Assembly: GCA_047495785.1 (NCBI GenBank)
Contig: JBLDXI010000013.1
Span: forward strand, 2,170,001 to 2,234,000
Reading direction: 5' to 3'
From: Lepidodermella squamata
Taxonomy: Eukaryota > Animalia > Gastrotricha
Length of the DNA stretch: 64,000 nucleotides
Part shown: piece after piece, positions 48 through 46,867 of the stretch
Layout: each line of letters starts with the position of its first letter
How positions within the stretch are numbered: the stretch's first letter is position 1
The notes under the pieces: generated by a model
The model's input: only the letters and a program-made list of their open reading frames with translations
Database searches by the model: none
What the model was told of the DNA's origin: nothing
Translations under genes and position numbers: made by a program

Positions 48-1181
48 ATGAAAATAATCGCATTGTTAGCCTTTCTCGGCGCCGTTGGTGCCATCCCCGA
101 GTACCAGAAACGCATCCCTCATGGCGATCAAGTCATTCACCCTTGTGACCCAACGAAACTATGGGGCCCTGTCGGCCACTGGGGACCGAATAGTTACGGA
201 AAAACGTCCCTGAACCCGTTTGGCAATGATTTCAAAAATGCTGGCCTTAATTGGCGAGCTGTCTGTAACCTCGACAGTGACGGCGATGGTTACACTAATG
301 GCGAGGAGCTGGGTGACCCAGACTGCCGCTTCGATGGCACCCCAGCCTCACTTGACCTCTATTACACCGAGTACACGAACCCGGGTGTCTGCGAGCCGGT
401 CAACTACCCTGGATGTAAGGACATCAACTCAGCCTTCCTGCTAGCTAACAACCCGGAATGTGCTGCTGCGATCAATGAAAAATGGCCTGGCCAGGGGTTC
501 AGCTGGAAATTAGGCGCTGCGGTGTGGAAGAGTAACCGGACGGCCACGCGCCCGCCGGCTCGTGACATCGCGAAAAATCTCGCAGATGCTAACAAACCAG
601 CCCCTGCTCCAGCGCCAGCAAACCGGAACCAACCAGCGCCCGCGCCCAACAATCGAAACCAGCCGGCTCCGGCACCTAACGGAAACCGGCCTGCCCCGGC
701 TAGCAACAGAACGGCGCCCGCCCCTGCACCAGCAAACCGGAATCAATCAGCCCCGGCTCCTGGAAACCGTAACCAGCCAGCTCCAGCCCCAGCGCCACCG
801 GCCGGCACAGCGCAAGGCATCCGAAATAACAACCAACCAGTCCCGGGACCAACTAATCGTAACCAGCCAGCTCCAGCTCCAGCTTCGACGAGCAACAGGA
901 CTGGCCCTGCGCCAAGGCCTGCTACTAACCGGAACCAAACAGCTCCGGCTTCCGGCCCAGCACCCAGCGGTAGTGTTGGAACCTGGAAGCTTCGCAAAGA
1001 TTGCTCTTGCTTCTGCCCGCGTGGCCCTGTTGATCCCGTTAATAATTCTATATTGAAGCTGGCAGGCGAAGGAATTAGGATTGGAACGCCAAGCTCGGAT
1101 TTTTCTCCTCGAACCGATAGAGACTCGCCCATCTATCCTTGTGTCTGCGCCTGTACGAAGGCTGGACTATGGACCCAGTGA
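48..1181 (+). CDS. Secreted temptin-domain protein, class I (temptin + NRNQPAPAP repeats + CxCxC bracket), intronless
   Basis: Single ORF with signal peptide MKIIALLAFLGAVGA. Temptin motifs HPCD..WGPVGHW..NPFGNDF..CNLDSDGDGYTNGEELGDPDC..PGVCEP, then Pro/Ala/Asn repeats, then WKLRKDCSCFC...CVCAC. Confidence 0.9.
   Translation: MKIIALLAFLGAVGAIPEYQKRIPHGDQVIHPCDPTKLWGPVGHWGPNSYGKTSLNPFGNDFKNAGLNWRAVCNLDSDGDGYTNGEELGDPDCRFDGTPASLDLYYTEYTNPGVCEPVNYPGCKDINSAFLLANNPECAAAINEKWPGQGFSWKLGAAVWKSNRTATRPPARDIAKNLADANKPAPAPAPANRNQPAPAPNNRNQPAPAPNGNRPAPASNRTAPAPAPANRNQSAPAPGNRNQPAPAPAPPAGTAQGIRNNNQPVPGPTNRNQPAPAPASTSNRTGPAPRPATNRNQTAPASGPAPSGSVGTWKLRKDCSCFCPRGPVDPVNNSILKLAGEGIRIGTPSSDFSPRTDRDSPIYPCVCACTKAGLWTQ
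590..960 (+). repeat. Coding imperfect tandem repeat encoding NRNQPAPAP-like units
   Basis: Repeated aaccggaaccaaccagcgcccgcgccc-like units inside the 48..1181 ORF. Confidence 0.8.
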
Positions 1182-2351
1182 TGCTCTCACGAGATGGCAA
1201 CATCGACAATCTCTCTCCACAGATTGTCCTGAACCCTTGACTCTTATTACTTCAATTTTTAAGGAAACACCGTTTTTTCATGTACGAATGAATGAATAGA
1301 ATAAGATACAGCTGCATTAAGAAATAAAAGGATGAAAAGCGAACATTATTTCATTGTTTATATCGGGCGTTGTTCTCTCAATTTTAAGGTACAAGAATTT
1401 GAACTGGTTTCCTATTTCAGCCGCAAGAATAATATTATTCTGGAGAAATCACCTGAATCGTTAGGATTGATGCGGATATCAAATTACGTGACCGACACGC
1501 TAAATCGTAATTATTAGCAGCAATCAATTATTTGATTTATTTATTTCGAATTAAAGGATTAAATCAGTCGAAGTTATCAATTATTCGAAATTACTCGTCA
1601 ATTTTATTCGAGTTTTATTTGCCAACCGAGAGAGTTCTCAATTCAGGACGCCTCTTCGTGCGTTCCGGAAAATTCGTTATTTTTTTCTAATTACTTCATC
1701 ACGGCTATTTTGTTTCGAAAACAAAAAAAATCTGACGGTTTAAAAAAGTTGGGGGTGTACCAAGAGATGAAAATAGCCGAGTGCTCGTAATTAATTGCTC
1801 GGTTTTCTGGCCTGTGTAGCACAAGTATATGAATCATAATTTCTGATAAAGAAAAACCCAACATTTATTTTATAACAATTAAGCCTTCAGCGGAAATCGG
1901 TTTCCAACTTGATTTGAAGCGAAAGAGGAAAGAGGAAGTGATGACAAGATGGATAATTTCAGCAGATTTTCAGCAGAGCGAATTCGCTATAAAACACCTT
2001 TTTTTATTGATATTGAAGCTAAAAAATCGAAAATCGGTAATTTTCCTCCTTTTGATCAAATCACTGAATGCTTTCTTCTAGCTGACCTTTTAATTTAGCT
2101 GCCCACATCTCAAAAAAACCGCAAAAAATTTCATTCAGGTGTTTCAAGTTTTTTTCCTTCCATTTTTTCGAGCGTCGACTGTTGTTCAGAAAAGCAATTA
2201 ATTATCACGATTATGATGAAGAGATGCGCGTGTGGGTTAGCTGGAGACTACTACGGCGATAAATAAATGCCCGGCAACACGCAAGCAAAAACTCGTGATT
2301 CTGCTCATTGTTTGTAATTAGTTTTTGTAGGAGAGTTGCGATAATAATAAT

Positions 2352-3188
2352 ATGTTAACCCCTCTGGTTTGTTTGACGCTGCTTGGCATCGCCGCGGCTA
2401 TCCCAGCGTTCCAGAAGCGAATCCCGTCCGGTGACATTGTCCCTCACCCATGCGACCCTGACAAGAAAATGTGGGGCCCAGTCGGCCATTTAGGCCCAAG
2501 CGACTACAGCAAGACCAAGTTGAACCCATTCGGCATTGATTTCAAGAACAAGAATCTCAACTGGAAAGCAGTTTGCGACATGGACAGCGACGGCGATGGT
2601 TGGACAAATGGCCAAGAGCTTGGCGATTCTAGTTGCCGTTTCGATGGCACTAATGGGGACGACCTTGACGCCTTCATAATCGGCATCGGCCATCCAGGCG
2701 TCTGCGAGCCTGTCAACTACCCGGGCTGTAAGAAAATAAACGAGTGGCTGGTGGCATCGAACCCTGAATGCGCTGCCGAGGTTAACAAGCCATTTGATGT
2801 TCAAATGTTGTTCAGGCTGGGACCTGGCGGAATCTGGCGACGCAACTTGACCGCTGTCCGCCCGGCTGAATCCCGTCCGGCCAACCCTGCACCAGCCCCG
2901 GCCAACAGAAATAACCCGGCACCTGCCCCGCCGGCAAATAGGAACAATCCGGCGCCAGCTCCGCCGACAAACAGGAATAACAATCCTGCCCCTGCCCCAG
3001 CCGGGCGCTCCAACTCGCAGTGGCAGTTGCGCAACGACTGTACTTGCTTCTGTAAGGACAATGGAGTTAGGAAGGGGCCAACCCAGGATCCTCCTTTCAC
3101 GCAATCGCCGGCTTTCAAGGACACGACGTACAACTCGCCGTTGAACGAATGCGTCTGCTCGTGCTCCAAAGCTGGCGCTGGACCTTGA
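2352..3188 (+). CDS. Secreted temptin-domain protein, class I, intronless
   Basis: Signal peptide; HPCD..WGPVGH..DSDGDGWTNGQELGDSSC..HPGVCEP; NRNNPAPAP repeats; WQLRNDCTCFC...CVCSC. Confidence 0.9.
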   Translation: MLTPLVCLTLLGIAAAIPAFQKRIPSGDIVPHPCDPDKKMWGPVGHLGPSDYSKTKLNPFGIDFKNKNLNWKAVCDMDSDGDGWTNGQELGDSSCRFDGTNGDDLDAFIIGIGHPGVCEPVNYPGCKKINEWLVASNPECAAEVNKPFDVQMLFRLGPGGIWRRNLTAVRPAESRPANPAPAPANRNNPAPAPPANRNNPAPAPPTNRNNNPAPAPAGRSNSQWQLRNDCTCFCKDNGVRKGPTQDPPFTQSPAFKDTTYNSPLNECVCSCSKAGAGP

Positions 3189-9394: not shown

Positions 9395-10420
9395 ATGCTG
9401 AAAACGGCAGTTGTGATAGCTCTGTTCGGGGCTGCTTCAATTGATGCTATACCATCGTTTCAAGATCTTATTCCCAATGGAGCCAACGTGCCGCACCCAT
9501 GTTCAACCGCTAAGTGGGGCCCAGTCGGCCACTGGGGCCCGAGAAAGTACGGCAAGCAGTTTCTGAATCCGTTCGGGAAAGACTTCGCTAACAACCGCGA
9601 CTGGAAGGTTTTGTGCAAACTGGACAGCGACCGAGACGGTTGGGCTAATGGCGAAGAGCTCGGCGATCCTGATTGCAAGTTCGAAAACAAGAACAATTGG
9701 GTTGCTTATTCCACAGGCGAGATTACGCACCCGGGTGTCTGCGAACCGGTCAACCACCCTGGTTGTAAGGAGATCAACCGAGAGTTTCTCGAGCCAAACA
9801 GCGCTGAATGTCGGCCGAAGATAAACACTACTTATACGACGAATACGACTTACACCCGTCGTAGAGGATCTTGGCGAACGGCTGCAGGTGCCAGCACCCC
9901 GACTGGTTCTGCTAGGTCCGGATTCAATACCACTGGAAACGCAACAGGTCCCCAGTGGAAACTAAGGGAGAGCTGCACTTGTTACTGCCTGGATAAACCA
10001 CCAAGAAATGAATCTGCCGGAAATTGGTGGGATAGGCGCCCGTCAGTTGATGACAACGACGATGATGGCGATGAAGATGATGATGATGATGACGTCGATA
10101 GCGAAGATGGAGTAGACGCCCCTCGTACCTTGAGTGGAGGAAACGGCCAGAAGGGTCAGAGGGGTGCTCGTGGCAATAACCAGCAAGGAAATCGCGGTGG
10201 AAATAATGACCGAAGTGGTGGTCGAGATAGAGGCGACCGCGGCGGCCGTGACCAGCAGCGAGGACCGCCTCCGCCCAGGGGACCACCTCCACCACCAAGA
10301 GATGGCGGAAGAATGCCAGACCCGCCTGCTATCAACTCCACTACCGCATTCACTGACGGCACCAACGATGCTCCGATCCGCGACTGCATCTGCGCCTGTG
10401 CCAAGCAGAACACTCCATAA
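9395..10420 (+). CDS. Secreted temptin-domain protein, class I, with acidic and RG-rich loop; intronless
   Basis: First ATG at 9395 (MLKTAVVIALFGAASIDA). Temptin motifs, then WKLRESCTCYC - poly-D - RG/NQ-rich - PPP - CICAC. Confidence 0.9.
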   Translation: MLKTAVVIALFGAASIDAIPSFQDLIPNGANVPHPCSTAKWGPVGHWGPRKYGKQFLNPFGKDFANNRDWKVLCKLDSDRDGWANGEELGDPDCKFENKNNWVAYSTGEITHPGVCEPVNHPGCKEINREFLEPNSAECRPKINTTYTTNTTYTRRRGSWRTAAGASTPTGSARSGFNTTGNATGPQWKLRESCTCYCLDKPPRNESAGNWWDRRPSVDDNDDDGDEDDDDDDVDSEDGVDAPRTLSGGNGQKGQRGARGNNQQGNRGGNNDRSGGRDRGDRGGRDQQRGPPPPRGPPPPPRDGGRMPDPPAINSTTAFTDGTNDAPIRDCICACAKQNTP

Positions 10421-10822: not shown

Positions 10823-11797
10823 ATGCTGACAAGCATTCTTGTTACAGTTCTACTTGGGGCCATTTCAATCGACGCAAGATCGTCATTCTTAGGACTTATT
10901 CCTAACGGAAACAACGTACCGCACCCATGCAATCCTAACGCTAAGTGGGGCCCAGTCGGCCACTGGGGCCCGAGCAAGTACGGCAGCCGGTTTCTGAATC
11001 CGTTCGGGAAAGACTTTTCCAGAAACCGTAACTGGAAAGACTTATGCAAACTAGACAGCGACGGTGATGGCTGGGCTAACGGCGAGGAACTCGGCGACCC
11101 GGATTGCCGGTTCGAAAATACGAATAACTGGGTTGCTTACTCCACCGGGGAGATTACGCACCCGGGTGTCTGCGAGCCGATAAACCACCCTGGTTGTAAG
11201 CAGATAAACCAAGAATTTCTCGGCCCCAGCAATTCTGAATGTGTTCCGAGGATCAACGCTGCTTTTTCGACGAATACGACGTACACCCGTCGTAGAGGAT
11301 CTTGGCGATCTGCAGCAAGTGGTAGCTCACCGGCCGGGTCTGCTCGGTCTGGATTCAATACCAATGGAAATGGGACAGGTCCCCAGTGGAAACTAAGGGA
11401 GAGCTGCACTTGTTACTGCCTGGATAAACCACCAAGAAATGAATCTGCTGGAAATTGGTGGAATAGGCGCCCGTCCGTTGATGATAGCGACGAAGACAGT
11501 GGCGCTGAAGTGGATGACGAGGGCGAAGATGTTGTGCGTAACTTGCCTAGTGGAGGTAGGAATGGCAACCAACGAGGAAATCGTGGTCGATATGACAGAA
11601 GTGCCGGTCGAGGCGACGATCGCCGCGGCGGCCGTGACCAGCAGCGAGGACCCCGTAGGGGAGGACCTCCTCCCCCACGAGATGGTGAAAGAATGCCAGA
11701 GCCACCACTTAACGCCACTACCGCATTCACTGATGGCACCAACGATGCTCCGATCCGCGACTGCATCTGCGCCTGTGCCAAGCAGAACACTCCATAA
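10823..11797 (+). CDS. Secreted temptin-domain protein, class I, intronless (apparent chimera)
   Basis: Signal peptide, temptin motifs and WKLRESCTCYC...CICACAKQNTP. The 3' half is near-identical to the 9395 gene; the 5' end is closest to the 14839 gene. Confidence 0.9.
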   Translation: MLTSILVTVLLGAISIDARSSFLGLIPNGNNVPHPCNPNAKWGPVGHWGPSKYGSRFLNPFGKDFSRNRNWKDLCKLDSDGDGWANGEELGDPDCRFENTNNWVAYSTGEITHPGVCEPINHPGCKQINQEFLGPSNSECVPRINAAFSTNTTYTRRRGSWRSAASGSSPAGSARSGFNTNGNGTGPQWKLRESCTCYCLDKPPRNESAGNWWNRRPSVDDSDEDSGAEVDDEGEDVVRNLPSGGRNGNQRGNRGRYDRSAGRGDDRRGGRDQQRGPRRGGPPPPRDGERMPEPPLNATTAFTDGTNDAPIRDCICACAKQNTP

Positions 11798-14838: not shown

Positions 14839-15654
14839 ATGCTGACAAGCGTTCTTTTTACAGTTTTCATTGGCGCCATTTCAATCGACGCAAGACCATC
14901 GTACTTAGGACTTATTCCTAACGGAAACAACGTACCGCACCCGTGCAATCGTACCGCTAAGTGGACCCCAGTTGGCCACTGGGGCCCGAGCAAGTACGGC
15001 AGCCGGTTTCTGAATCCGTTCGGGAAGGACTTTTCCAAAACCCTCAACTGGAAAGATTTGTGCAAACTGGACAGCGACGGTGATGGATGGGCTAATGGCG
15101 AAGAGCTCGGCGATCCTGATTGCAGGTTCTATAACTCGAGTAACTGGGTTCCATACTCCACCGGCGCAATTACGCACCCGGGTGTCTGCGAGCCGATCAA
15201 CCACCCTGGTTGTAAGGAGCTCAACCAAGAATTTCTCGTCCCGAGCAATCCTGAATGTGCGCAGCGGGTAAACATCGCCTTTTCGACAAATTCGACGTAC
15301 CAACGTCCAAGGGGATCTTGGCGAAATGAAACAGTGAACCCGTGGCATCTAAGGGAGAGCTGCACATGCTACTGCCTGGAAAAGAAAGTTAATAGAAACG
15401 ACAGCATGCCAACTGACGGCGGTACCATGACTGGAGTTAACGCCCCTAGTACCTTGTCGAGTGGAAACGGAAATGGCCATGGTGGCGGCAACCAGCAAGG
15501 AAATCGCGTTGAATCACCTCCACCAGCAATAGACTGCCGCGCAAAAGTGCCATCGCCCCCACTCAACGATAATGCTGCATTCAATGACAACACCAAGGAT
15601 AGTGCGCTCAGCGACTGCGTCTGTGCCTGTGCCAAGCTCAGCTATTACCCATAA
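14839..15654 (+). CDS. Secreted temptin-domain protein, class I, intronless
   Basis: Signal peptide, temptin motifs and WHLRESCTCYC...CVCAC. Confidence 0.9.
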   Translation: MLTSVLFTVFIGAISIDARPSYLGLIPNGNNVPHPCNRTAKWTPVGHWGPSKYGSRFLNPFGKDFSKTLNWKDLCKLDSDGDGWANGEELGDPDCRFYNSSNWVPYSTGAITHPGVCEPINHPGCKELNQEFLVPSNPECAQRVNIAFSTNSTYQRPRGSWRNETVNPWHLRESCTCYCLEKKVNRNDSMPTDGGTMTGVNAPSTLSSGNGNGHGGGNQQGNRVESPPPAIDCRAKVPSPPLNDNAAFNDNTKDSALSDCVCACAKLSYYP

Positions 15655-15912: not shown

Positions 15913-18110
15913 ATGTTACACACAACCCTATTGCTATTTGTTTGCCTGGAAACCGTAATATCGCATCCTTGGTTCACATCCTTACTTCCTAACGGCGATA
16001 AAGTGCCGCATCCTTGCAATAGAAATGAAACATGGTTAGGTGTAGGCCATCGTAGTTCAATTGGGGCGGGACCTTTCAACGTTTTCGGCCGAGATTTCGA
16101 TAAAAACGGCAAGAAATGGTCGAAGGCCTTGTGTGAATTAGACAGCGACGGCGATGGTCGTACTAACGGCCAAGAACTCGGCGATCCTAACTGCGTATGG
16201 ACTGATGGGGCGAAACCTAGCGTAACAGACCACTCGAAAATCAGTCACCCTGGTGTTTGCGAACCCTTAGACACCCCGGCTTGTCGGGAGAAGAACGCAT
16301 TCTTGATGGCTGACGAGCAATGCAACAAAGATATTAACAAAACCGATTGGTGCCCGGCTATCAATCGAAAGGGAGTGAAGCAACTCATCCTCCGCTTCAA
16401 TGAGACCAACGTACCTGCCAATGACACTTCCTACATGTGCCAGGAATACTCCTTACCTTCGGACGATGATTACGAAATTATTGCGGTAATTCCGTTTTTA
16501 TCATATAACGTAGTAAGGAGTAAATTTGGAAAAATTTAGAAAATCAGCTTTAGCTATAAAAAATCCTAAAATTTGAAGAAAATGTAGGCCATGCAGTTCC
16601 TGATTTTTTAGCAAGTTTTAAGAATTTTCTCATTTTTATCTGATTTTTTGCAATTTAAAATGTGATTGGACAATTAGTGGGTAATTTTGGACACTCATTT
16701 GCATATGAATATTGATCTAATTTTGACGCGATTTTTACGCTCGAGCTTATTAATTCCATATAATTATTTATTATCTATTTTCAGTGATATATTTAATGCT
16801 ATTTTTATATTCAGTGGGAACCTTTCATCACGAATGTGGAAATTATGCATCACTTGGTGGCCTATGTCTGCGATAAGCCTGATGAGATCCGACGTCTCCA
16901 AGCAATGAAAAATTTCTATAAAAACCCAGTTGTATGCGGAATGGTACCAGTCTGCACCAGCTACTCCCTGATTTGGGCTTTTGGAGTCCCTTCACGTTGC
17001 TACAGCGACGATGTCGCAGTTCCATTCGGCAAAAATTTCTACAACAAAACGATTCTGCAAATTCACTATAACAACCCTCTCCAACGGGACTACTATGTCG
17101 ACTCTTCTGGAATAGTTATATATTACCAGAAGAAACAACGACCTCAGAAAATTGGCACCTTCCTTGTTGGGAATAGCGATATCATCCTGCCGCCGAGAAC
17201 ACCTGTTTCCGTAGTAACAGCAACTGGCTTCAAAGACAACTGCAGCGCTGCTAGGCTGGGTAATAAGAAGTACAATTTAACTTCGATGCTGTTCCACATG
17301 CATAAAACCGGAAGTTATGGCAAGTTGATTTTAACGAAAAAATCCGGCAAGGTGATCACAATCCTCGACCGGTCTATCGACTACGACATGCCGGCGATGT
17401 TGGAGTTCAATGGGAAAAATTACCTGGAACTCGAGGGCGGCGATTCGTTGTCGGTTGAATGCCGTTACAACACCATGGACAGGTCGAAATGGACAACATT
17501 TGGCGAGAGTACCCAAGATGAGATGTGTATTGCGATTTTTGAGATAACGCCATTCATCAATAACCAACTGGCTGATAGTGCCCTCGATATCGGCCCGATC
17601 GATGCTTGCAGCCAGCGGAGCAATGTTATTGGAAATTGCTCGCGTTCTGAATTCAGGAATCTTTTGAACTACACCAAGGTTAACAATATGGGCAGTTTCG
17701 AAAAAGACTGCGGATGCTCTGGCATTTACCCTGTGCCCTCTTGCTCGAGTAAATGCTATGATTTCCTGAATAGGACTGGTTTTCTGAATATGAAACAGTG
17801 CTTGGAAGGTTCGGTTTTCTTTTTGACGGGGGCCGTAATGGATTGGACGCAGACGTTGGCGGTTAGAGCGCATGTTGAGCGATGCATCGCGCTGAAGGAA
17901 CCGCCGAAGAATGGGACCATGTGCACTGCGACAAGTCCTGCCTTGTTGGTTGAAATCCGCGGTAATGCACCTGCAGCTGCAGCAACGACTCAGAAGCCAG
18001 CAGCTCCAGTCGTTCAGGTTACGATGGCTGTAAAAGCTAATACGCAGTCTGGTAGTGTCATTACGGCTTCTGTGGTTCTCACAATTTTGGCAATTTTCCT
18101 TGCTTTTTAA
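15913..18110 (+). CDS. Temptin domain fused to copper type II ascorbate-dependent monooxygenase (DBH/TBH/MOXD1-like); exons 15913-16485, 16815-18110
   Basis: In-frame splice IIA|WEPF. CuH ligands MHHL and QIHY, CuM ligands FHMH and DEMC. Cys-rich C-terminal region and hydrophobic GPI-like tail; no DOMON domain. Confidence 0.9.
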
Positions 18111-21610: not shown

Positions 21611-24600
21611 ATGCGATGCCACCGATGTGTGGTACTGCTGAATTGTTTACGCATATTTTTCGTCTCGTATCTGGCCGATGGTTTTCCAACTTATTTGAAG
21701 CTTATTCCAAACGGCGACAGGGTGCCTCATCCGTGTGATCGTAATTCAGCATGGCTTGGCGTCGGTCACCAGTTACCAGACGGTTCGGGCCGGCGAAATT
21801 CTTTCGGTGCAGATTTTCAACGATTAAACAAGTCTTGGACTCGAGAGCTATGCCGGCTAGACAGTGATGGTAATTAATTATACTTCCCCTTTCATTTTAA
21901 GTCTAGAGAATCAACCAAATTCGCTGCATCTCGATTATTTTTATTTTTGACAGCAATTTTTAAGATTTTTATGTTTGAATCGGCCGAAATTTATAAATGG
22001 GTGACCCTATTAACCATAACCCTGACCCAATCCTAATGTTAAACCTAACCCTAATCCTAACCCTAACCAGGAAAACCTCAAAAAATCATCGTGTAAAAGC
22101 AATGAACAAATGAACAAATGAACAAATGAAAATGTTTTATTTTACGTCCACCTTCAGCTAAAAGTGATGGTAATATATATATATACAAGCCTTACCCGTG
22201 AGGGTTTAGGGGACGGCTGACGACGAGAGATCAGCTTCAGGAACAGTCGCGAACAATCTGCTTTTTCCCATGAATTCATAATTTTCTATACTGTTACATA
22301 GTAGCTGCCATTCTTCCCGGTCTCTAGCTGTTACTTCCGCCAATTCTAAATCCGCAATTTTGTGAATTTCGATGCGTCGCATCAATAAGGTTGATTTACG
22401 GGGTCGCCCTCGTTTTTTAGGTTCATTAGGATCCCTGATACGTTTTTCATGTATATAAAAAATTCCGATTTTTAGAAGGCTTCTTCGGAGGCAGTCAGAC
22501 CATCGGGTTGGCGGCCTGCCGCGAGGCAAGTACCAACTCGGGTCGACTGCTTTCCAATAATACATAATACTCGTGAGACTTTCAGGGTCATATTCGTCCT
22601 GCCGAATTATATGGTGTAAAAGCAAGCTCAATTTAAAAAATTATTTAAAAATAGGTAAAATATACCACAAAATTATCTACAAATATTATGAAAATTTACT
22701 AAATCGCAAAAATGTGCAGAAATCATCTGCCCTAATTTAATTAAAAAAATCGAAATTTTCTGAATTAGCACACATTTTTCAATCTCCCTCTAGTCTCAAA
22801 TTAACCTACCTCAAATTAACCTTACGGTTACGGTCTTGAATTTTGGAATTCGAATATTGAAAATATGAATAATTCCTTTTTTTTAAGTTTCTCAGCGGCA
22901 GGAATCCTTAATTCTCTAATTTTATGATATATTCCAGGTGACGGAAGAACTAACGGCGAGGAGCTGGGTGATCCTAACTGTTCGTGGACTGTTGGCTCCA
23001 CCCCTAGTGTAACCAGCCGGGACTTGCTATCTCATCCTGGCGTGTGCGAGCCGACTGATTCGGCCACTTGTTTAGCTAAAAACCGATTCCTACTCACCCT
23101 GGATCCGTGCTTGAAAAACAAAACCAACGACTGGTGCCCGAGCGTTTCACGGCCATTTGTCCGCTCGATCACTCTACACCTCGACCCTGTTCATCTGCCC
23201 GACAGCGAATCATTCAAAATTTGCCAGATTTTCCCGATACCAAGCGATAATTCGTATCATGTAATCGCCTGGGAGCCGTTAGTTACCAACCCGGATTTAG
23301 TCCATAGTGTTACGCTATACGCATGTGACGAATCGAGCGATGAAGCAGCTGCGGCGCTGCAAAAATCGACAAACGCCTCAGAATGTCCGTTAGTACCAAC
23401 TTGCTCGTCGATAATCGCGATTTGGACATCAGGAGCTCCGCGGCGGTGTTTCAACGATCAAATCGGCCTGCCTATGGGCAAAAATTTCTATTCGACTGTG
23501 ATTTTACAAGTTCATTACCTTCGAACGTCGTTGACGAACAAAAAAGTTCGCGACTCTTCCGGCCTGAAGTTGCATTTTACGCCGGTTTTAAGGCCGACTG
23601 AAAAAGGCATGATTGCTGTAGGCCAAAGCGACATTCAACTGCCACCTCGGACTAAGCTGACTACAGCATTCGGAAAAGCATTTCAGGGCGATTGCAGCCG
23701 CCGTCAATTAGCGTCTCATTCATCGTATAAAATCACCTCGATTCATTTTTTAATGCACGAAGCCGGCAATTGGGGTCGATTGACAATCGCTAGAAATTCG
23801 ACCGGGAAACGGCTGACAATCATCGATGAAGCAATAAATTATTTGACGCCGAAATTCGTTGCTTTCAATGTTTCGAGTCAAATCACTATCGAGCCTGGTG
23901 ACGGTTTTGAGGTTGAATGCCGTTACGACACGTCGAAGCGCAGGAAGTGGACATTTTTCGGAGATTCATTCAAAACCGAGGAAAAATGTTTGGTGTACCT
24001 GGAAATCTACCCTAGACCCTCAAATCGTCTATTTCGAAATTTTGCTGACCTGGTAAATTAAGAGCAATTATCAATACCATTTGGAAGAATTTCTATTGAT
24101 TTTAGGGAGATCTGAGCTATTGTGCGAATCGTGAGGCTGTCATTGGAAACTGCTCTAAAAATACTGTTGGTGGAATTTTGGTCAACAGCGAAAAATCCCC
24201 AGAACAGGGCTTAATGGCCAGCTGTACATGCCACTCATATCCATCGACTGCCTGTTCCAGTAAATGCTATGGGTAAGTGAAATTCGTCTACACCATGTCC
24301 CACATTTTGGCAACTCTTTTCTGATTTTGCAACTTCTCGCTGGAAATTTATCCTTTTTTCAAATTGAACCGAGTAATGGGATTAATACTAGTGCTGGGAG
24401 CCTTTCCCAATCGTTTATTTTCTATCTCACCTGAAAAAATGATAAACCTCGGAAATCTCGGAAAACCCCCGAAAAACCCGATGGTTCGATTATTATCGGT
24501 ATTTTACTCGGTTGAATTAAATTTCTCCAGATTTTTTAAATTCATGTTGGTTAGCTTCCAAGTTTACCATTAACACTTCAACTGCCCGAACAAGGGGTCC

Positions 24601-25221
24601 AAGCTCCAGGATTTAGACCCAAATCGTATTTTTCCCTTAAGGAATTTGGAGACATGTATTTCCTTTGGTTGCGTTACATATGGGACACATTGTTACAAAA
24701 TTTTAAATAATTTTTCAAAATTGAAAAATTCGCGTGAATGAAATTGCTGGCCTATAACATCAATATTTTGAGCCTATAAAATCGGCATTAAATCTTCCTC
24801 AATGTTGGAAAATTAGGTGAAAATTATAAAAAGTTGTAATAATTTCATTTTTCGCAGGTTTCTATCTCGCGCCGGTTTGCTGCACAATCCTTGCCTGACA
24901 GGAGTCGCCATTCACTCGATAGCTCGCTACTGGCTGACAATGATGCCCGAACAGCTTTATTACCTTCAATCACAAACCGACCTCTGCTCGACCTTGAGTA
25001 AAAATTCAGCGCCCGCCAACGACACGGTTTGCTCCGAAGAAATCATGCGGCCTCTTCGCGATGACCCGTCTCGCTTCATCGAAGCCTCCGAACGAGGCAC
25101 ATCAGTTAACGCCGCTGACCACATTTTAAGTGGGTCTCTTAAAACCCTCTTGAGCTTTGTGACTATTATAGCTTTTCTTATGCTGACACGGCATACCATT
25201 CAAGTGCATCGAATACAATGA
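21611..25221 (+). CDS. Temptin + DBH-like monooxygenase paralog with substituted copper ligands; exons 21611-21869, 22938-24052, 24106-24272, 24858-25221
   Basis: All three GT-AG introns splice in frame (DSD-G|DG, ADL|GDL, CYG|FLS). Colinear with the 15913 gene, but has VHSV, FLMH and EEKC at the Cu-ligand sites. Confidence 0.85.
22010..22068 (+). repeat. Degenerate (CCCTAA)n-like repeat within intron
   Basis: taaccataaccctgacccaatcctaatgttaaacctaaccctaatcctaaccctaacc. Confidence 0.55.
22172..22631 (-). mobile_element. 3' fragment of RTE-clade LINE with (TA)n tail, in intron 1 of the 21611 gene
   Basis: Peptide PRGRPPTRWSD...ARDREEWQ is typical of the RTE ORF C-terminus; (TA)n at 22172-22185. 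Confidence 0.8.
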
Positions 25222-27338: not shown

Positions 27339-28069
27339 ATGAAAATCCATCCGGTGGCGTCGTCTTATGGCTTAATTTTCACCCTTGCGATATTCATCAG
27401 CAAATGCCAAAGTTTTCCTGACTACGTCGGCTACGTCCCGAATGGTGATTTATAATATTCTCATCAATCATCTCTAAAATATTTTAAAAAAATTAGGCGA
27501 TAAAATTCCACACCCATGTGACAGGACAAAAACATGGCCAGGTAACACTTTCGCGCTTTGAATTGAATTTCGAACTTATTTTTTTTTAATATTTATCAGC
27601 TATTGGACATGAATGGCCTGGAGGTCATGGCAAAACAACTCCATTTGGCGATCACTTCCCCGGGGTGAGTTTTGATTTTTGTTTATAAATTATTTTTATA
27701 ATTTTTATGAATTTGTAGCACTGGGGTAAAGAGATTTGTCAATACGATTCTGATGGTATATTTGTTAGGAAAATTATATTGTCAAATGAAGGTTTCCATT
27801 TTTAACAGGCGATGGTCGCACAAATGGCGAAGAACTTGGTGATCCCGACTGTGTTTGGACGCGAGGCGACGAGCCGGCAATAACAGATCCTGAACTCCTT
27901 AGCCACCCAGGTTCGAATTATTATTAGCCGATTGTTCTCTAATTTATTTGATTATTTTTCTCGCTTTCCAGGGGTTTGCGAGCCGATTGACGCCCCGATT
28001 TGCAAGGACAAGAACAAGTTCTTAGGTCGTGACTGCTTGGCGAAATTTCCGACAAAAAGCGAACTGTGA
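27339..28069 (+). CDS. Minimal temptin-domain protein ending KSEL; 6 exons (27339-27444, 27497-27541, 27600-27664, 27719-27755, 27809-27910, 27972-28069)
   Basis: Five 52-61 nt GT-AG introns rebuild VPNGDKIPHPCD..WPAIGHE..CQYDSDGDGRTNGEELGDPDC..HPGVCEP..KSEL*. Absent from the ORF track. Confidence 0.85.
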
Positions 28070-28312: not shown

Positions 28313-29339
28313 ATGATTATTTCAGCTATTTTTCTGGCACTTTTTCTCAATTCAGCCTTGGCAATTCAAGGCTACCAATTCAGGGTGGGTTCCATGTTGG
28401 TTCCACGAATTTAGGTCTGTAAAATCAATTAATTTAGGTACCCAACGGTGAACATGTCCCACATCCTTGCAGTCATCCAATCAGATGGCCTGGTAACTAA
28501 ATGATTTATTGTGTGACCTACTTTTGATTACCGACTCCTGGGTATAGGATTAGGCCACCAGGATCCAGCAGGAGACGGAACAACGAATAAATTCGGCACA
28601 GATTTCGCACTTAGCGATCACACTTGGACTCAAGCTCTTTGCCGGTTAGATTCCGACGACGATGGCCGAACAAATGGCGAAGAATTGGGCGATCCAGATT
28701 GCGTTTGGACGATCTCGGCGACCCCGGCTGTTACAGATCGAGCGCTATTGTCGCACCCTGGTGTTTGCGAGCCTATAAATTCGGCCCAATGCTACGCTTC
28801 CAACTCGTTTTTATCCGGCTACCCTGAATGTTTGACTCTAATGGCTTCGATGGTCGCCGATGAAATTCGGGAGTCGACTACGACTACGCCAAGCACTACG
28901 GCTACAAGAGCTACTAGGGGCGTTACGAACTCTACAATCAGCGTCAGATCAACCACTACTACTACGACCAGAAGCTCGATTCAAACCTCTACAAGATCAA
29001 CGACGACTTCAACATCATCAATAAGTAAGTTTTTTTTTATTTTCTGAAATGCAAGCTATTTTTTGCATATATAGCCCCAGCAGTTTCGACCTCTTTTACA
29101 AGCACGGCGGCTACAACGGCATTGACTACAACGATTTACCTGCCGCGAGGTTGATTTGCGACATCTTAGTTTAAATAAAATACCATTATTTGTTTAATCA
29201 ACCAGCTAAGACGACCGAGCCTACGGTAGGTGCCACTGGTTCGACTTCCCGAAACCAGGCGTTGAACGTGCTGCTATGGTTTTCAGCTGTGTTTGTATCG
29301 AGCTTTGTCATAAGCTCATTTTATTGCCAACATATTTGA
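28313..29339 (+). CDS. Temptin domain + Ser/Thr mucin stalk + hydrophobic (GPI-like) tail, multi-exon
   Basis: MIISAIFLALFLNSALA; spliced FR|VPNGEHVPHPC..WP|GLGH..DSDDDGRTNGEELGDPDC; T/S-rich stalk; ends LLWFSAVFVSSFVISSFYCQHI. Confidence 0.82.
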
Positions 29340-29705: not shown

Positions 29706-30455
29706 ATGGCCAATCTAAATTTTGTTCTTTCATGCGTGGCACTGCTTTGCAATTTCGTGGAAATCGATGCTTTGGCCGCATATGGCGCCATGGTAAGGAA
29801 CATGCCACTCAATGTTTCGAAACACGATTTCACACGTTATTCTCCAGATTCCTAATGGCCTTCAAGTTCCACACCCTTGCGACACCAAGACCACATGGCA
29901 AGGTATACTCAGCTGCCACTAGAGCGTTTGAATCTTCATTGATTTTTTACAGGCGTCGGCCATCAAAGCCCGGCCGGAAGTGGAGCTAATAACCAGTTTG
30001 GCATTGACTTCGCAGCGGCTGGTCGGACCTGGGGAAATACGTTGTGCCGGAAAGATTCAGACGGTGATGGCAAAACCAATGGTGAGGAATTGGGCGACCC
30101 GAACTGCCAGTGGACGACAGGAGCCTCGCCGGCTGTAACAAACATGGCCCAATTGTCGCACCCTGGTGTTTGCGAGCCGATAACTTCGGCCGGATGCATT
30201 GCGAAAAATACATTTTTAAACAACGTGTCAATTTGTGCCAATTTACTGACGACTACCACGACAGTCGCGACCGGATCGGTTTCAAACACAACTACGGCAG
30301 CTAATTGTGAGTTGAAAAATCAGGAAAATCGGATAGAAATTTGACAGATTTGATTAATTACAGCTCAATCAACGACGACTAAAAAGTCATCGGCTGTTAA
30401 AATTGAAGTTGGAGCAACGTTCACGATTGGAATAGCGATGCTCCTGCTGTTGTAG
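29706..30455 (+). CDS. Temptin domain + Thr stalk + GPI-like tail, multi-exon
   Basis: MANLNFVLSCVALL..; AM|IPNGLQVPHPCD..WQ|GVGH..DSDGDGKTNGEELGDPNC; ends TFTIGIAMLLLL. Confidence 0.85.
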
Positions 30456-34001: not shown

Positions 34002-34117
34002 CAAATTAAATCGATCGAAAATCACTGTTTGGTTGAATAAATGACTAATTTACTTGTAAAAATATTTATTTTCATGATTATTCATGTCGTAAATTGTCAC
34101 AAGAGCAATAAGTTTTT

Positions 34118-36012: not shown

Positions 36013-36528
36013 TGCTTCTATAGTTACTATTGATGCTTTTAGTTCCGTGGATTCTAAAATATTTATTTGTTCTCAAGATAAATTATAAGTGGACAGCGGT
36101 TAAGAAGAGTTGTGCATCGTTGCCGTGTTTATCTAATTTGACACAACCTGTACTACGCTACTGCCCAACGTTCTGCCCGAAAAGTAATCATAATCCGATT
36201 AAAAAGTTGCTCATGTGTGCGTTGAAATTTGTTTGGCCGCGTGAGATAATAATTTGCTACGTGACGTGCGTCGCATTTTTTTCTCTTCCATATAGGTAGC
36301 CAAAATAATGCGGGAAAAAGATGTTTTTGTTGTCAACTTCCAGTGCGTTTGTTTTCTGAGGCTATAATATAGGCATTAAGGTGAGAAAGAAACAAAGTCG
36401 TAAAAATTACGATAATATTAGCACTGTCGCTAATTATCATTATAACAGCAGTTTAGTTTATTACCTAGTCATGTGCAAAAAGGGCACGGTTACAATGTCC
36501 GTGAATCACTTACTTACTTCACTTACAT

Positions 36529-36584
36529 TCACTTACTTCCTTGTTTTACTTGATTTAAATCAAGTAAAACAAGGAAGTAAGTGA
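36529..36584. repeat. Perfect 56-bp spacerless palindrome
   Basis: tcacttacttccttgttttacttgattt|aaatcaagtaaaacaaggaagtaagtga. Confidence 0.9.
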
Positions 36585-36685
36585 GTGAAGAGTAAACAAC
36601 ACTTTTTAAGGTTATAATTTATGCAAATGTCTCTTGATTCTAAATCAAGTGAGAAATAGAAAAACAACTTATTTGTAGACGAAAT

Positions 36686-39561: not shown

Positions 39562-41466
39562 ATGACTAGGTTATCCTCTTCGTTGTACGCCTTTCTTTAC
39601 AGCTTTGCTTTGTTGGGTTTTCTCACCTGTCTCGACTCATTTCCGTTCTATCAACTGCAAATTCCGAATGGTAACATTTCGGCTGTAAAAACAAAGTTGC
39701 CTTAATCATTAAGTTTTTTAAGGTGGTCGAATTCCGAACCCATGCGATCGATCTATAATCTGGCAAGGCGTTGGTCACGAGAACTCGTCCGGATCTGGCT
39801 CTCGCAATCCATTCGGCCAGGCCTTCGCTGCTCAAGGCCACAGATGGACTAAGGAATTGTGCCAGGCTGACAGTGACAACGACGGTCGAACCAATGGCGA
39901 GGAACTCGGCGATCCAGACTGCACCTGGAACATGATTGGCGAGCCAGCCATGACCGATCCAGCTCAACTTTCCCATCCAGGTAAAATCGAAAATTTATTT
40001 GAAAAATAATTTAAAATGATTCTTCAATTCAGGAGTTTGCGAGCCGATCGAAGCGCCGAAATGCCGGAAGATGAACGATTTTCTTCGCAAAAACGACATT
40101 TGCCGGAGGGTATTGGATCGAATTCGAAAGGAGGAAGAAATGCAAGCAAACAACGAAGAGAGCAGCGAGGCACAGGAGCGAAGCTCCCACTTCACAACGC
40201 CCTACCCACAAACAGGTTTTCACCTCATTTTCTCCCATATTTGAACCTGAATTTTTATCACCATTTTTAATAGAGGAGAAACAAGAAAATGAGAATCAAA
40301 AGCCTGAGGCGGAGACTACAACTGCTTCCACCATGGCTCTGCCCGCCGAAGTTCTAATCTACCGAGGACCTCTCGACGAAGTCATTGGAGGTGAAATTCA
40401 GCAGATCGAACAGCCAGGAAGTGTCAAGACTGAGGAGGCCCAGAAGCAACTGGCCGAACAGCCGAGCAGTTTGCCAACCGATGACATGCTGAAACAACAT
40501 GCTGAACAGCCGAGTTTGCCGACTGATGAAGTTCAGAAGCTACAGGCCGAACAAGGTCAAACCCAACAAGAACCGAGCCAATCTCAAGAATTTCAGGGTC
40601 AAGTTCCGACTCAGCAAGAAACTCAGATTCGGCAGCCAACAGTCAACGATTCGGTACTACCACCGCCTCCCAACGCTGTTGCCTACCAGACCGTGACGAT
40701 GATGGCTGAAAATTTTCCGGTTGAAGTTCAAATCCCGATACCGGGTGTCGGAGATTGGTTCGATCAGTCTTTGACAGATGGTTCGAATCGGCAACAAGCT
40801 TCGGGGACCGAACAGCAACCTTTTGGAACCGAGCAGCCAGCTTTCGGTAACGAGCAGCAAGCTTTTGGAACCGAGCAGCCAGCTTTCGGTAACGAACAGC
40901 AAGCTTTGGGAGCCGTGCAACAACCCGAAACTTCGGAGACTTTTCTTGACAATCAGCAACAGCAGCTTCAAAATCAGCAACAGGTTGGCAACGAACAGGA
41001 GGGACTTGAAAACCGAGCTGGTGGTGTGGTACCCGATCGTACCGAGGTGTTCCAACTTCCAACTGTTTACCAGGAGTTCACCCCGGGTCAAAAGCCTGAT
41101 CTCAAGTACTACTTCGAGCAAACTGGTGGTAACGGAGCTTTCCCTCCAGGGCCAATGGCTGAAGGTCCAGCAGAATTTCGCCAAGCTCTACCGCCACCCA
41201 TGATTGCACCTGGCCCGGCTCCTCCAGGACCAGAGGTGGTTCCAGTGATTGCTCGGCCATTTGTTTCGATTTCGCCTCCCGTTGAAGTTCGACCGATTCC
41301 TCAACAAATCGGTAGGGTGCCAGCCGTAGCCGTACTGCCGATTATGCAACCGCGGTACCCGCCTCCCCGCATTGCGCCTTATCAATGGGCCCGGCACCGC
41401 AGCGGCGCCTGCTCGACAGTTGCGGGCTTCGTCGTCCTAATTTCACTGATGGCCTTATTTTTCTAG
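39562..41466 (+). CDS. Temptin domain + long Q/E/P-rich stalk + GPI-like tail, multi-exon
   Basis: MTRLSSSLYAFLYSFALLGF..; IPNG|GRIPNPCD..DSDNDGRTNGEELGDPDC..HP|GVCEP; joins ORF 40333-41466, which ends VAGFVVLISLMALFF. Confidence 0.85.
40805..40925 (+). repeat. Coding 21/42-nt tandem repeat (FGTEQPAFGNEQQA)
   Basis: ggaaccgagcagccagctttcggtaacga.cagcaagcttt occurs twice, plus flanking partial units. Confidence 0.8.
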
Positions 41467-41757: not shown

Positions 41758-42722
41758 ATGATGGAGAAATTAACGATTTTTCTGCTATTGAGCTTGGCGA
41801 CGCTGGTATCAACATTAAGCAAATACCGGGTGCTAATTCCGAACTCAATGAAAGTACCTCACCCTTGCAATGCTTCGGCAATTTGGTATGGTAAGTTCAG
41901 AAAATTTATGGTTTTTTTCTATTTTTGATAAAATTCGTGAAGCTATCGGCCACGAAAGAGAAAAAGGAGGTGGCCAAAGGACTTCTTTCGGCCGCGATTT
42001 CGTTGTTATTGGCAACCGATCATGGACCGTTGCGTTGTGTCAGGCCGATAGTGACGGTGATGGTAAGACAAATGGTGAGGAATTGGGCGATCCTAACTGC
42101 GTATGGATGGCTGGGGTGAACTTGACCGTTTCAAATGCCAGTAATTTGTCGCACCCTGGTGTTTGCGAACCGATAGACTCGCCTCGATGTGCGAACAAGT
42201 CGTCTTTCCTACTAATGCCGGTTAATAATTGTCCTATGGCGGCTCTTTACAATTATCCAGATCCTGCAAGTAAATTTTAGGCCAGAATTTTCTTTGATAT
42301 TTACCAATTTTTGATCGTCATACCTATTAGGTAACCTGACGATGGGCAACTTGACGATTGCCTCAAATTCAATGGTTGTTGGGAATAATATGACAACACA
42401 GTTTATTCAGTCTCAAACAACAGTTCCTTACTCGGCTACTTCAGCCCGTCCCGATTCAGCTGGGACGTCGAAAAACGATGGAAAAATGGATTACGTCCCT
42501 TCCAGTCCAGCAACGACTTGGGGATTGACGACTTCGGGTCAATCTGGTAATCCACCTGTAATTAGTACGACGCATGCCGCTACTACAACGCAAACAGTTC
42601 CGCTTGCGCAGACTACGGCGAAAGGTCAGCAATCAACCTCGGATGCGAACACCCTGCCTAAAGCTGCGATGACTTCGGTTGTTTTTAATGCGATTTTATT
42701 TATGCAATTAGCCTATTATTGA
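41758..42722 (+). CDS. Temptin domain + Ser/Thr stalk + GPI-like tail, multi-exon
   Basis: MMEKLTIFLLLSLATLVST; IPNSMKVPHPCN..WY|AIGHE..DSDGDGKTNGEELGDPNC; ends VVFNAILFMQLAYY. Confidence 0.85.
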
Positions 42723-42799
42723 GATGGGCTCGGTCTCTCATAGAAGTTGCACAACGGCATTAGTCCAGTTGGAAAATTACAATAATAATAACATGACAC

Positions 42800-44608: not shown

Positions 44609-45543
44609 ATGATGATGATGATGATGTTGAACAAAGCGCTAGTTCTGTTATCTATTTTGTATCACCCAGTAAGTTCGCTCGCTAGATACAAAGCTTTAAT
44701 CCCAAACGGATACCAAGTTCCACATCCTTGCGATCCAGCAATAATATGGAGCGGTAAAATAACTATAATTTAATTAAAATTTTGGATAAATTCAGTTCTC
44801 CGCTATTCAAGGCGTTGGTCATGAAAGGCAAACAGGTGCAGGGGAGCGAAATGCATTCGGTCGAGATTTCAGCCTGGCAGGTCACATGTGGACGCCTGAT
44901 CTGTGCCGTAAGGACAGTGACGGCGATGGGCGGACGAATGGGCAGGAATTAGGCGATCCTAACTGCGTGTGGAGCTTCAACGCTAATGCAGCCGTTGCCG
45001 ATGCTAGCCAGATGTCTCACCCGGGTGTTTGCGAGCCGATCGAATCGCCGCGATGCGCTAATCGAAATTTATTCCTGCTGCTACCTGTCAATAACTGCTC
45101 GATGGCTGCGAGGTACAACGTCCCAAGATCCGAACGAAGTAATTTTTCTTATAAAAAAAAATTGAAAATTTTAAACGATTTTTGTAGCCTCAACTACGGC
45201 TCCAGCCATCAACGTCACAATGCGTTGGAATCCGACTACTCCAATGAATGAAACAGTTGCAATTTCGACTGCCATGATGTTGATAAATTCGACCACGATG
45301 GTAGCCCTGCCGACGACTGGCATGGCTCCAGCCCAGACTACGCCAGCAATTAGCCAACAGACGACGACAGGTCGACCGATGACGACCATGCCAGCCCAGC
45401 CTGTTGTTGCGGTTACTACTGCTGCTCCCGCCCAAGCAACTCCGGCTAAAACTTCGATGAATTCAAGAGCTTCGGGCATTCAATCAACTTATCAGGCGAT
45501 TCTTCTCGGCCTGCTGTATCTATCATATGGGAAATTTTACTGA
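44609..45543 (+). CDS. Temptin domain + Thr/Met stalk + GPI-like tail, multi-exon
   Basis: (ATG)6 then LNKALVLLSILY..; IPNGYQVPHPCD..WS|GVGHE..DSDGDGRTNGQELGDPNC; ends AILLGLLYLSYGKFY. Confidence 0.85.
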
Positions 45544-46160
45544 AACCACACAAAAATCGAAATATTGCCATGTACCTCAATAAAGGCTGCCCGAACCTAT
45601 TCTTTAAGTTGATTAATTATTAACAATTTTTTAGCAAAATATTCAAGCTTTTAAAGCCATATTTTCGAATGGAACTTACCTTCAACCGGTGTTATTATAA
45701 ATTAATCTCACTCATCTTGTTAAAATGTTTTAGTATTTCAAGTAATTTTATGAAGTAATAAACCTTGATGTAGGTCAAGTTTCCAGTCAAGATTTTTTGT
45801 CTGAATCAGGACTTTGGCTTTTTTCAGGCTATAAGCCTCGTGATTTATTCGCATGCGTGTTCAAAAGTCTTTCCGAACGAACTTTCTCGCAGCGTTTTAA
45901 CGCAAATAATAGGCGTCCCGCAAAACTATAAGCAGCTGGCAAGCCGGAATACATCGGCAAAACGCAAAGAGCCGGAAGCGCAAAGTCTCGCAAGTCGTCA
46001 TTTTTTATATGACACTGCACGACACCACGCCCGCCTCCTCTCTGTCTCGCGCTTTCTTGCTAAAACTTGATATTTATCCTGAGGATCAATTTCACCCCAG
46101 GAGAGATAATCACCTGCGTTTTGGAACGCTCATAGTCGCAATTTCATCGGTCAGAAAAAA

Positions 46161-46867
46161 ATGTTAAAAATCACGCTAATTACCTGCGCAGTTTTTTCAC
46201 CAGCCCTGGGCTACAGCCGCTACAAACAGCTGTTGCCAAATGGTAACAGGGTACCACATCCCTGCGACTCGTCCCTGGTATGGGACGGCGTTGGTCACGA
46301 GCGAGTGACCGGCGGCGGTTTGCGGTCGCAATTCGGCCGCGATTTCGCCCTAGCTAACCACGTTTGGACCGTCGAGCTGTGTCGAAAGGATTCGGACGGC
46401 GATGGGCGCACGAATGGCATAGAACTGGGCGACCCTGATTGCGTCTGGTCGATGAACGGCATACCGGCTGTTACTGATGCGACGAAATTGTCCCATCCTG
46501 GGGTCTGCGAACCTGTCAACGCGCCAAGATGTGCAAATCGCAATGTTTTCCTTCTTTTACCATCAAATAACTGCCCGATCGCGGCTTCATTCAACCAAGG
46601 TAAAGAAGTAGTTTAAATTAAAAAATTGAGTTTTAAATATTTCAATTTCCAGCTCCTAATGGAACTTCATTCAATTTCACGGCGTTTGAGAGTGTTCGAT
46701 CTGCTAATCCTGTAACAACTGCCCTACCAATTACCGTTGTTTCGGCAGAAAAAGTGAAGCAATCTCTTAGCGAAAGGTCATCAGCTAGTGGATCGAAATT
46801 GTCTGAAAAATATCTCTTACCAAAAATGTTACTCATTCTGTATACATTTTTTATTGTGGCAATCTAA
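46161..46867 (+). CDS. Temptin domain + short stalk + GPI-like tail, 2 exons
   Basis: MLKITLITCAVFSPALG; uninterrupted temptin domain; intron after FNQ; ends MLLILYTFFIVAI. Confidence 0.87.

Follow-up and report, generated by a model that had tools for sequence, protein, structure and literature searches.

Temptin genes with and without a copper monooxygenase in a tandem array of the gastrotrich Lepidodermella squamata

A stretch of 64,000 nt from the genome of the gastrotrich Lepidodermella squamata (GCA_047495785.1; 121 Mb in 151 contigs) was analysed, corresponding to positions 2,170,001-2,234,000 of contig JBLDXI010000013.1 (here C13), + strand, and referred to as the window. It contains 14 genes with a temptin domain at positions 48-46867, numbered here from 5' to 3'. 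A preliminary description, made from the sequence alone, had listed 14 co-oriented genes sharing one domain, and a six-frame motif scan found every one of them at its start, with 14 places in total and on the + strand only. A degenerate DNA pattern for the motif DSDGDG has nine exact matches in the window against 0.00 expected, and position 46867, given as the end of the series, falls on the stop codon of gene 14. For all searches, folds and trees, the queries were single exons or single-exon genes.

The shared domain corresponds to Temptin_C (PF24784), as had been proposed. It scores above the curated cut-off of 27 bits in 14/14 genes (Pfam, own-genome scan and a local hidden Markov model, HMM), with 88-124 bits in genes 1-6 and the weakest piece, exon 5 of gene 8, at 35.8 bits; the profile failure that had been named as a refutation was seen in none of them. 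Across 51 proteins of other taxa, the PNG turn, the four Cys, GVGH, NxFGxDF, DSDGDG, NGxELGDPxC and HPGVCEP are invariant or nearly so, and the three His of the motifs HPC, GVGH and HPGVCEP are kept in 41, 51 and 50 of the 51. The four Cys and the Asp loop with its subsequent Glu/Asp are present in all 14 window genes (in the short exons of gene 8 these residues were read by eye), which includes the DxDxDG loop pointed out beforehand. The His triad is complete in 12 of the 14, having Asn in place of the third His in gene 1 and of the first His in gene 11. In Aplysia temptin, the four cysteines have been mapped as two disulfides. A histidine brace, considered for gene 6 and the L001 array member described below, which have a His at the mature N-terminus, was discarded: this position is Tyr/Phe in 48 of 51 homologues and His in one.

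The temptin module of gene 14 gave a confident AlphaFold2 model (predicted local distance difference test, pLDDT, 90; predicted template modelling score, pTM, 0.84), whose fold is irregular for the most part and has three short helices. Among ESM Atlas models, mollusc temptins and temptin/monooxygenase hybrids superpose on it with template modelling (TM) scores of 0.82-0.85, and bacterial Temptin_C proteins with other modules do so more weakly. Against the PDB, neither Foldseek nor an exhaustive VIA-align pass (Z >=2) returned a match for this model, and a sequence profile of the domain returned calmodulin as best match at E 0.9, nothing usable. The bacterial Temptin_C-like folds of the ESM Atlas adjoin a MopE-type metal-binding motif, Ig-like surface domains and secretion tails, and a haptophyte lipid desaturase also carries such a fold. 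The MopE-type association is a lead only; this distribution suggests that the module is far older and more promiscuous than the name of a pheromone protein implies.

Four architectures had been distinguished in the preliminary description, and each was found again (Table 1): five genes with a Cys-bracketed tail (genes 1-5), two monooxygenase fusions (genes 6 and 7), one minimal gene ending in KSEL (gene 8) and six stalked genes with tails resembling signals for a glycosylphosphatidylinositol (GPI) anchor (genes 9-14). Also as proposed there, the products look extracellular, with a hydrophobic N-terminal leader in 14/14 genes and GPI-signal-like tails in genes 6 and 9-14, where a 12-aa hydropathy window reaches 1.8-3.1 at 0-13 aa from the C-terminus; in genes 1-5 and 8 the C-terminal window stays at <=1.4, with no hydrophobic end. 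Genes 9-14 have one or two temptin exons each, followed by stalk exons and the hydrophobic extreme C-terminus, joined in the gene models through introns of 49-61 nt, and the introns that join domain to stalk are in phase 1. Gene 8 consists of six mini-exons. The KDEL-type endoplasmic reticulum (ER) retention pattern is [KRHQSA]-[DENQ]-E-L (PROSITE PS00014), which K-S-E-L fails because Ser is disallowed at the second position; the protein may be retained in the ER through a variant motif. The least certain gene models are the middle exons of gene 9 and the 3' part of gene 7.

Table 1. Temptin genes of the window, blocks of the temptin array on C13, and related or interrupting genes. Positions are those of the window unless a contig or locus is named; DBH, dopamine beta-hydroxylase; ORF, open reading frame.
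Feature	Position	Strand	Exons and introns	Product or content	Temptin_C (bits)
Gene 1	48..1181	+	single exon	377 aa; signal peptide, temptin, linker (Pro/Ala/Asn-rich repeat), Cys-clasp	92.9
Gene 2	2352..3188	+	single exon	278 aa; temptin, linker, Cys-clasp	87.8
Gene 3	9395..10420	+	single exon	341 aa; temptin, Cys-clasp; linker 137 aa, Asp/Gly/Arg/Pro-rich	94.4
Gene 4	10823..11797	+	single exon	324 aa; temptin, Cys-clasp	91.4
Gene 5	14839..15654	+	single exon	271 aa; temptin, Cys-clasp	92.4
Gene 6	15913..18110	+	exons 15913-16485, 16815-18110; intron 16486-16814 (329 nt, phase 0, GT-AG)	temptin, DBH-like copper monooxygenase, Cys-rich region, GPI-signal-like tail	124
Gene 7	21611..25221	+	exon 1 21611-21869; intron 1 21870-22937 (1068 nt, phase 1); exon 2 22938-24052; more exons up to 25221	temptin, monooxygenase-like core	
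Gene 8	27339..28069	+	exons 27339-27444, 27497-27541, 27600-27664, 27719-27755, 27809-27910, 27972-28069; introns 52-61 nt	minimal temptin protein; KSEL end; no hydrophobic tail	
Gene 9	28313..29339	+	introns 28385-28437, 28493-28547, one starting at 29025, one ending at 29205	temptin, Ser/Thr-rich stalk, hydrophobic C-terminal tail	
Gene 10	29706..30455	+	introns 29793-29847, 29903-29952, 30307-30363	temptin, Thr-rich stalk, GPI-signal-like tail	
Gene 11	39562..41466	+	introns 39671-39722, 39981-40032, 40216-40273	temptin, long Gln/Glu/Pro-rich stalk, GPI-signal-like tail	
Gene 12	41758..42722	+	introns 41891-41942, 42270-42330	temptin, Ser/Thr-rich stalk, hydrophobic tail	
Gene 13	44609..45543	+	introns 44754-44811, 45139-45187	temptin, Thr/Ala/Pro-rich stalk, hydrophobic tail	
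Gene 14	46161..46867	+	intron 46600-46652	temptin (all in exon 1), short stalk, GPI-signal-like tail	
Array block	C13 1.992-2.107 Mb	+		~20 genes, enzymes for the most part	
Array block (window)	C13 2.170-2.217 Mb	+		14 genes, two enzymes	
Array block	C13 2.268-2.363 Mb	mostly -		9 genes, eight enzymes	
Canonical DOMON + copper monooxygenase gene	L002:1568-3364 = C12:758,568-760,364	-	single exon	598 aa	
Papain-family cysteine protease ORFs (Peptidase_C1), tandem	31061-32041, 32732-33781	+		unrelated; break the array	
Ankyrin-repeat gene	ORFs 34118-34639, 35309-35734	-		unrelated; breaks the array	

In genes 6 and 7 the temptin domain is accompanied by both domains of a copper monooxygenase, the N-terminal Cu2_monooxygen (PF01082) and the C-terminal Cu2_monoox_C (PF03712), all above cut-off (37.6 and 43.0 bits for exon 2 of gene 6 alone; 70.6 and 33.0 bits for gene 7). 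Gene 6 aligns with human DBH (4zel, E 1.4e-18), including the CuH (HH, H) and CuM (HxH, M) sites. The six copper ligand columns read H H H H H M in 27 of 28 enzyme genes of the C13 array; the sole other case is gene 7, with H S H L H K (HH to HS, HxH to LxH and Met to Lys). With three of six ligands replaced, gene 7 is a probable pseudoenzyme, and the attached copper oxygenase of the preliminary description therefore stands for gene 6, which has all six ligands, but probably not for gene 7. The exon join of gene 6 is fixed by homology, since neither gene 7 nor an array member from beyond the window has a break in the corresponding stretch. One open frame of gene 7 (22928-24058) covers the second half of temptin together with the entire enzyme core, and intron 1 of this gene breaks the loop as DSDG|DG, at a position also found in gene 8 and four array members, where the intron has ~40-50 nt. 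That the fusion is not a prediction artefact follows from an array member outside the window (L001:1631-3184), in which leader, temptin and both enzyme domains are held in a single frame of 517 aa.

The genome has 13 DOMON matches, none of which falls within the window or the array. Because temptin holds the DOMON position, the window fusions are classed as temptin/monooxygenase hybrids and not as DBH proper. The whole genome has three monooxygenase loci without temptin, one of which is a canonical single-exon DOMON-DBH gene (Table 1), presumably the true tyramine/dopamine beta-hydroxylase and distinct from the temptin hybrids. Since the genome has this separate canonical gene, the array hybrids are not considered the catecholamine-pathway enzyme.

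The window is not a self-contained unit. A whole-genome six-frame scan and the local HMM gave ~62 merged temptin loci with ~67 genes, of which the commonest form is the fusion with a DBH-like copper monooxygenase (~38 genes), and copper-monooxygenase matches occur <=3 kb downstream on the same strand at 39 of the ~62 loci. On C13, the temptin array comprises ~43 genes over ~370 kb (1.992-2.363 Mb) in three blocks. The 14-gene 'superlocus' of the preliminary description does not hold as a unit, because the array extends well beyond it and most of its members are enzymes; for the same reason, the 12 non-enzyme genes of the window are the exception in the array. The window is the part where the non-enzyme derivatives concentrate and the most varied in architecture. 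Outside it, an array member at L001:5275-5664 (C13:2,107,275-2,107,664) has a main temptin exon that leads directly to a hydrophobic tail; lacking a stalk, it adds a fifth layout to those of the array.

The tails of genes 1-5 share a Cys-clasp module, in which W-K-L-R-x-x-CxCxC is followed by a low-complexity linker of 37-137 residues, the motif P-P..N.[ST]..F.D.T and CxCxC once more. Four small secreted proteins encoded 1.4-4.6 kb upstream of the window consist of this module, in which Trp, Pro, Phe and six Cys are again invariant, and the clasp motifs are invariant across these nine genes (five chimeras and four stand-alone). In the genome, the module was found at this locus and once on contig C33, and nowhere else. 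It has no match in Pfam or among Atlas features, and a clasp profile run against 1.84 billion representative proteins gave one match (P0143) and no credible relative; P0143 was rejected as a homologue, being a satellite-like tandem repeat that covers the first motif only. The clasp tail is an orphan, lineage-specific module, and the temptin tree groups all five chimeras in a single clade (Shimodaira-Hasegawa-like approximate likelihood ratio test, SH-aLRT, 98). On the simplest reading, a single fusion of a temptin gene with the clasp gene next to it, where the two arrays meet, would have been followed by four duplications. The AlphaFold2 model of the clasp is of low confidence (pLDDT 54.5), with strands exactly at both CxCxC motifs; it is suggestive only, fitting a cystine ladder that closes the linker and, equally well, intermolecular cross-links.

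Upstream of the window, at C13:2,153,198-2,168,652 (L006:5406-8652, L005:3198-7162), there is a tandem family of small secreted clasp-only proteins, in which a leader and W..CxCxC precede a Gly/Pro/Gln-rich linker and the other CxCxC; Pfam, the Atlas and the representative proteins likewise gave no relatives for it. Farther upstream are clasp relatives with CxC pairs in place of CxCxC.

Pairwise comparison of genes 3, 4 and 5 gave ratios of nonsynonymous to synonymous substitution (dN/dS) of 0.17-0.34 at dS 0.45-0.74 for the temptin part, with 0.17 between the close paralogues 3 and 4, and 0.28-0.83 for the tails. The low domain dN/dS at substantial dS indicates that these copies are not young and that the temptin module is constrained. 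This bears on a reading in which the array is a neutral tandem expansion, with many copies decaying or artefacts of prediction and the four architectures without meaning. Consistent with it are the ligand loss of gene 7 and the retroelement-like ORF in its first intron, the low-complexity and fast-evolving tails and the exon joins, which were deduced from splice sites and homology. On the other side, open frames, leaders, canonical splice sites and stop codons are present in 14/14 genes, the diagnostic temptin residues are kept in all of them, the domain dN/dS is low as given above and the clasp motifs do not vary across nine genes; a neutral expansion is extremely improbable.

Two retroelement-like ORFs, at 18602-19279 (-) and 22206-22631 (-), have no Pfam match and resemble by eye the C-terminal part of a reverse transcriptase of the type lacking long terminal repeats (non-LTR); the second is the one in intron 1 of gene 7. 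A tRNA cluster (5124-5896; ARAGORN) lies between genes 2 and 3, with Lys-CTT on the + strand and Glu-TTC, Pro-CGG and Phe-GAA on the - strand. The array is interrupted at 31061-38551 by the protease and ankyrin-repeat genes of Table 1 and by an ORF at 36686-38551 for which no Pfam match was found. In the region 3' of the array (48066-56728) there are extracellular genes of the LDL-receptor class A/EGF type (49273-49698, 50643-51239 and 51648-53048) and a GOST seven-transmembrane gene at 56099-56728 (-).

Here it is proposed that the window is the central section of an array derived from a temptin/copper-monooxygenase hybrid gene, in which the temptin module was reused with new tails; as a whole, this explanation is considered reasonably probable. 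Its structural and evolutionary part is held with high confidence. The array would descend from a spiralian hybrid gene, whose ancestral form had a secreted, disulfide-locked temptin with a calcium loop at the place of DOMON, a two-copper hydroxylase core and usually a GPI-type tail. Repeated local duplication in the window would have separated temptin from the enzyme and attached other tails. Genes 1-5 would thus have acquired the orphan Cys-clasp/disordered module from the small-secreted-protein family directly upstream, and genes 9-14 a mucin-like stalk and GPI signal through phase-1 introns, while gene 8 acquired nothing; one full enzyme would have been left (gene 6), gene 7 having lost half of its copper ligands. 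Two tests of topology by the approximately unbiased (AU) method on the domain tree, which has 80 columns and includes eleven non-enzyme copies, rejected neither a single origin of the six stalked copies (p 0.56) nor one shared by the whole set of eleven (p 0.66), and the quick domain tree scored worse than the constrained trees. The domain phylogeny that had been suggested as a check thus recovers the clasp clade, but an 80-column tree cannot order the events.

The functional part of the proposal is tentative, and its probability is put on the low side. The temptin module may be an extracellular, probably calcium-dependent binding unit, all products being predicted to be extracellular. In the enzymes it would do the job of DOMON, namely targeting or partner binding. 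In the copies without catalysis, the same function would be presented on the cell surface or set free in a secreted matrix such as cuticle, adhesive or mucus, and their partner may be the one bound by the temptin module of the enzymes themselves.

Several points weigh against this explanation. The exon joins were deduced from GT-AG mini-introns of 49-61 nt and homology, and the leaders, GPI signals and the KSEL statement come from hydropathy and motif heuristics. Calcium binding by the DxDxDG loop is read from motif conservation only, and the predicted temptin model is without a solved structural relative that could lend it a function. Because the domain tree is poorly resolved, the enzyme part may have been lost once or several times. 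Furthermore, the functions documented for mollusc temptins are pheromonal or attractant and would fit signalling as well as a matrix.

Signalling is the basis of one alternative, in which free or released temptins serve as water-borne or contact attractants and the expansion is a diversification of signals. The only temptin functions reported as experimentally shown are those of pheromone or attractant in Aplysia and Biomphalaria (Cummins 2004/2007 and Pila 2017, as cited in later work), temptin families of 12-13 genes are known in snails, and by hydropathy gene 8 and the clasp chimeras are without membrane anchors. However, six of the 12 non-enzyme genes look membrane-tethered, the KSEL end of gene 8 is atypical for a secreted protein, and the domain is ancient (sponges, protists and bacteria), and in these organisms a mate pheromone is unlikely as its general function. 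Chemical communication is judged unlikely.

The preliminary description had favoured an integrated system, in which soluble, tethered and enzyme-linked copies bind each other through temptin-temptin contacts and build a matrix, glue or mucus modified by the oxygenase. The co-located and co-oriented genes do have complementary topologies (soluble with cross-linkable Cys, GPI-stalked and GPI-tethered enzyme), and gastrotrichs, the host here, have adhesive organs and scales in their cuticle. For Aplysia, temptin is reported to have been put forward as the 'glue' of the pheromone complex, and a temptin-like protein occurs in the abalone shell matrix. Yet tandem duplication fully accounts for the clustering, enzymes without a non-enzyme partner nearby make up most of the array, and only one of the two window enzymes has a complete copper site; an integrated system seems improbable. 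A further reading, regarded as very unlikely, is a self-assembling extracellular material, in which clasp chimeras (genes 1-5) and the upstream clasp-only proteins would polymerise through CxCxC ladders, stalked GPI-temptins would fix it to the epidermal surface and the GPI-anchored enzymes would dock on it by their temptin module and hydroxylate it; the product could be cuticle scales or adhesive. If true, it would give the temptin-monooxygenases a first substrate class and temptin a matrix-targeting role.

The window is a natural dissection of the family, in that one module is seen there joined to a complete enzyme, to a probably disabled one, to a surface stalk, to a cross-linkable orphan tail and to nothing else. 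What the temptin module binds becomes directly testable because the window offers it in these varied contexts, and a confident temptin model without a solved relative is a reasonable target for structure determination.

The 517-aa array member, used as query, retrieved more than 100 proteins with PF24784, PF01082 and PF03712, at 33-38% identity over 85-100% of the query, from bivalves, gastropods, Lingula, the bryozoan Watersipora, Macrostomum and the sponge Sycon. This overturned the apparent rarity of the fusion that was suggested by a word-based search with the enzyme exon of gene 6, which had returned DOMON-type relatives only. The automatic names of these proteins are 'DBH-like monooxygenase protein 1/2', 'MOXD1 homolog', 'tyramine beta-hydroxylase-like' and 'Temptin'. 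Many spiralians and at least one sponge therefore have hybrids, as a rule concealed by 'DBH-like/TBH-like' names (TBH, tyramine beta-hydroxylase), and counts of 'DBH/TBH-like' genes in spiralian genomes should not be taken as counts of catecholamine-pathway genes.

A 'Temptin/mono-oxygenase hybrid', in which temptin replaces DOMON, was described in Pomatoceros, Aplysia and Lottia and proposed as a lophotrochozoan synapomorphy (Takahashi et al. 2009, PMC2762978); the match in Sycon argues against a restriction to Lophotrochozoa. Of the lineage specificity claimed in the preliminary description, what stands is the size of the expansion and the Cys-clasp tail; the domain and the fusion are widespread, in molluscs, annelids, a brachiopod, a bryozoan, a flatworm and a sponge (own searches; PMC2762978). 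The temptin literature otherwise deals with Aplysia pheromones, the Biomphalaria attractant, snail families of 12-13 genes and shell formation. Full-text literature searches with 'temptin', and with 'temptin' and 'DOMON', returned no functional study of the hybrid enzymes, and the published L. squamata assembly paper has no mention of temptin or monooxygenase. The temptin-monooxygenase family has been known since 2009 and is unstudied; new here are the non-enzyme architectures, the clasp chimeras and the lone pseudoenzyme.

The closest sequences, at 44-54% identity, come from one metagenome assembly, where temptin-monooxygenase genes are also in tandem (contig ENA ERZ27333047 k141_410304), which points to a related, unsequenced animal in that sample. 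An exact-sequence look-up of seven window proteins in a collection of 15 billion sequences found none of them present.

Compared with the temptins of Aplysia and snails (~100-130 aa), the window genes share the Pfam domain, the four Cys and the DSDxD-type calcium loop, and gene 8 has the same minimal layout of leader and domain; the other eleven non-enzyme genes add a Cys-clasp or a stalk and GPI signal, which are undescribed for temptins. The nearest named temptin, from Elysia, has ~50% identity over 74% of the query. DBH, TBH and MOXD1 have in common with gene 6 the catalytic core and the C-terminal Cys-rich region, whereas gene 6 has temptin instead of DOMON.

In abalone nacre, a major matrix protein is 'tyramine beta-hydroxylase/temptin-like' and has a C-terminal R/G-rich disordered tail (PMC6003135), which by analogy would parallel a matrix role for the window proteins. 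By its description it resembles genes 3 and 4, which have an Arg/Gly/Asp/Pro-rich linker, in being a secreted temptin-like protein with a disordered tail; no CxCxC clasp is reported for it, and it comes from a mineralised matrix, whereas mineral is not expected in the gastrotrich.

The closest known system is the hybrid family itself, with which genes 6 and 7 of the window, and ~36 further ones in this genome, share the order of leader, Temptin_C, Cu2_monooxygen N and Cu2_monoox_C, without DOMON. Tandem arrays seem to be present elsewhere in the family, in bivalves (consecutive locus tags in Sinanodonta) and on the related metagenome contig. This genome differs in its far higher copy number, ~38 fusions in 121 Mb, a set of temptin-copper-monooxygenases that exceeds by far any other found in this analysis, and in having one probable pseudoenzyme together with the window derivatives that carry temptin without the enzyme.

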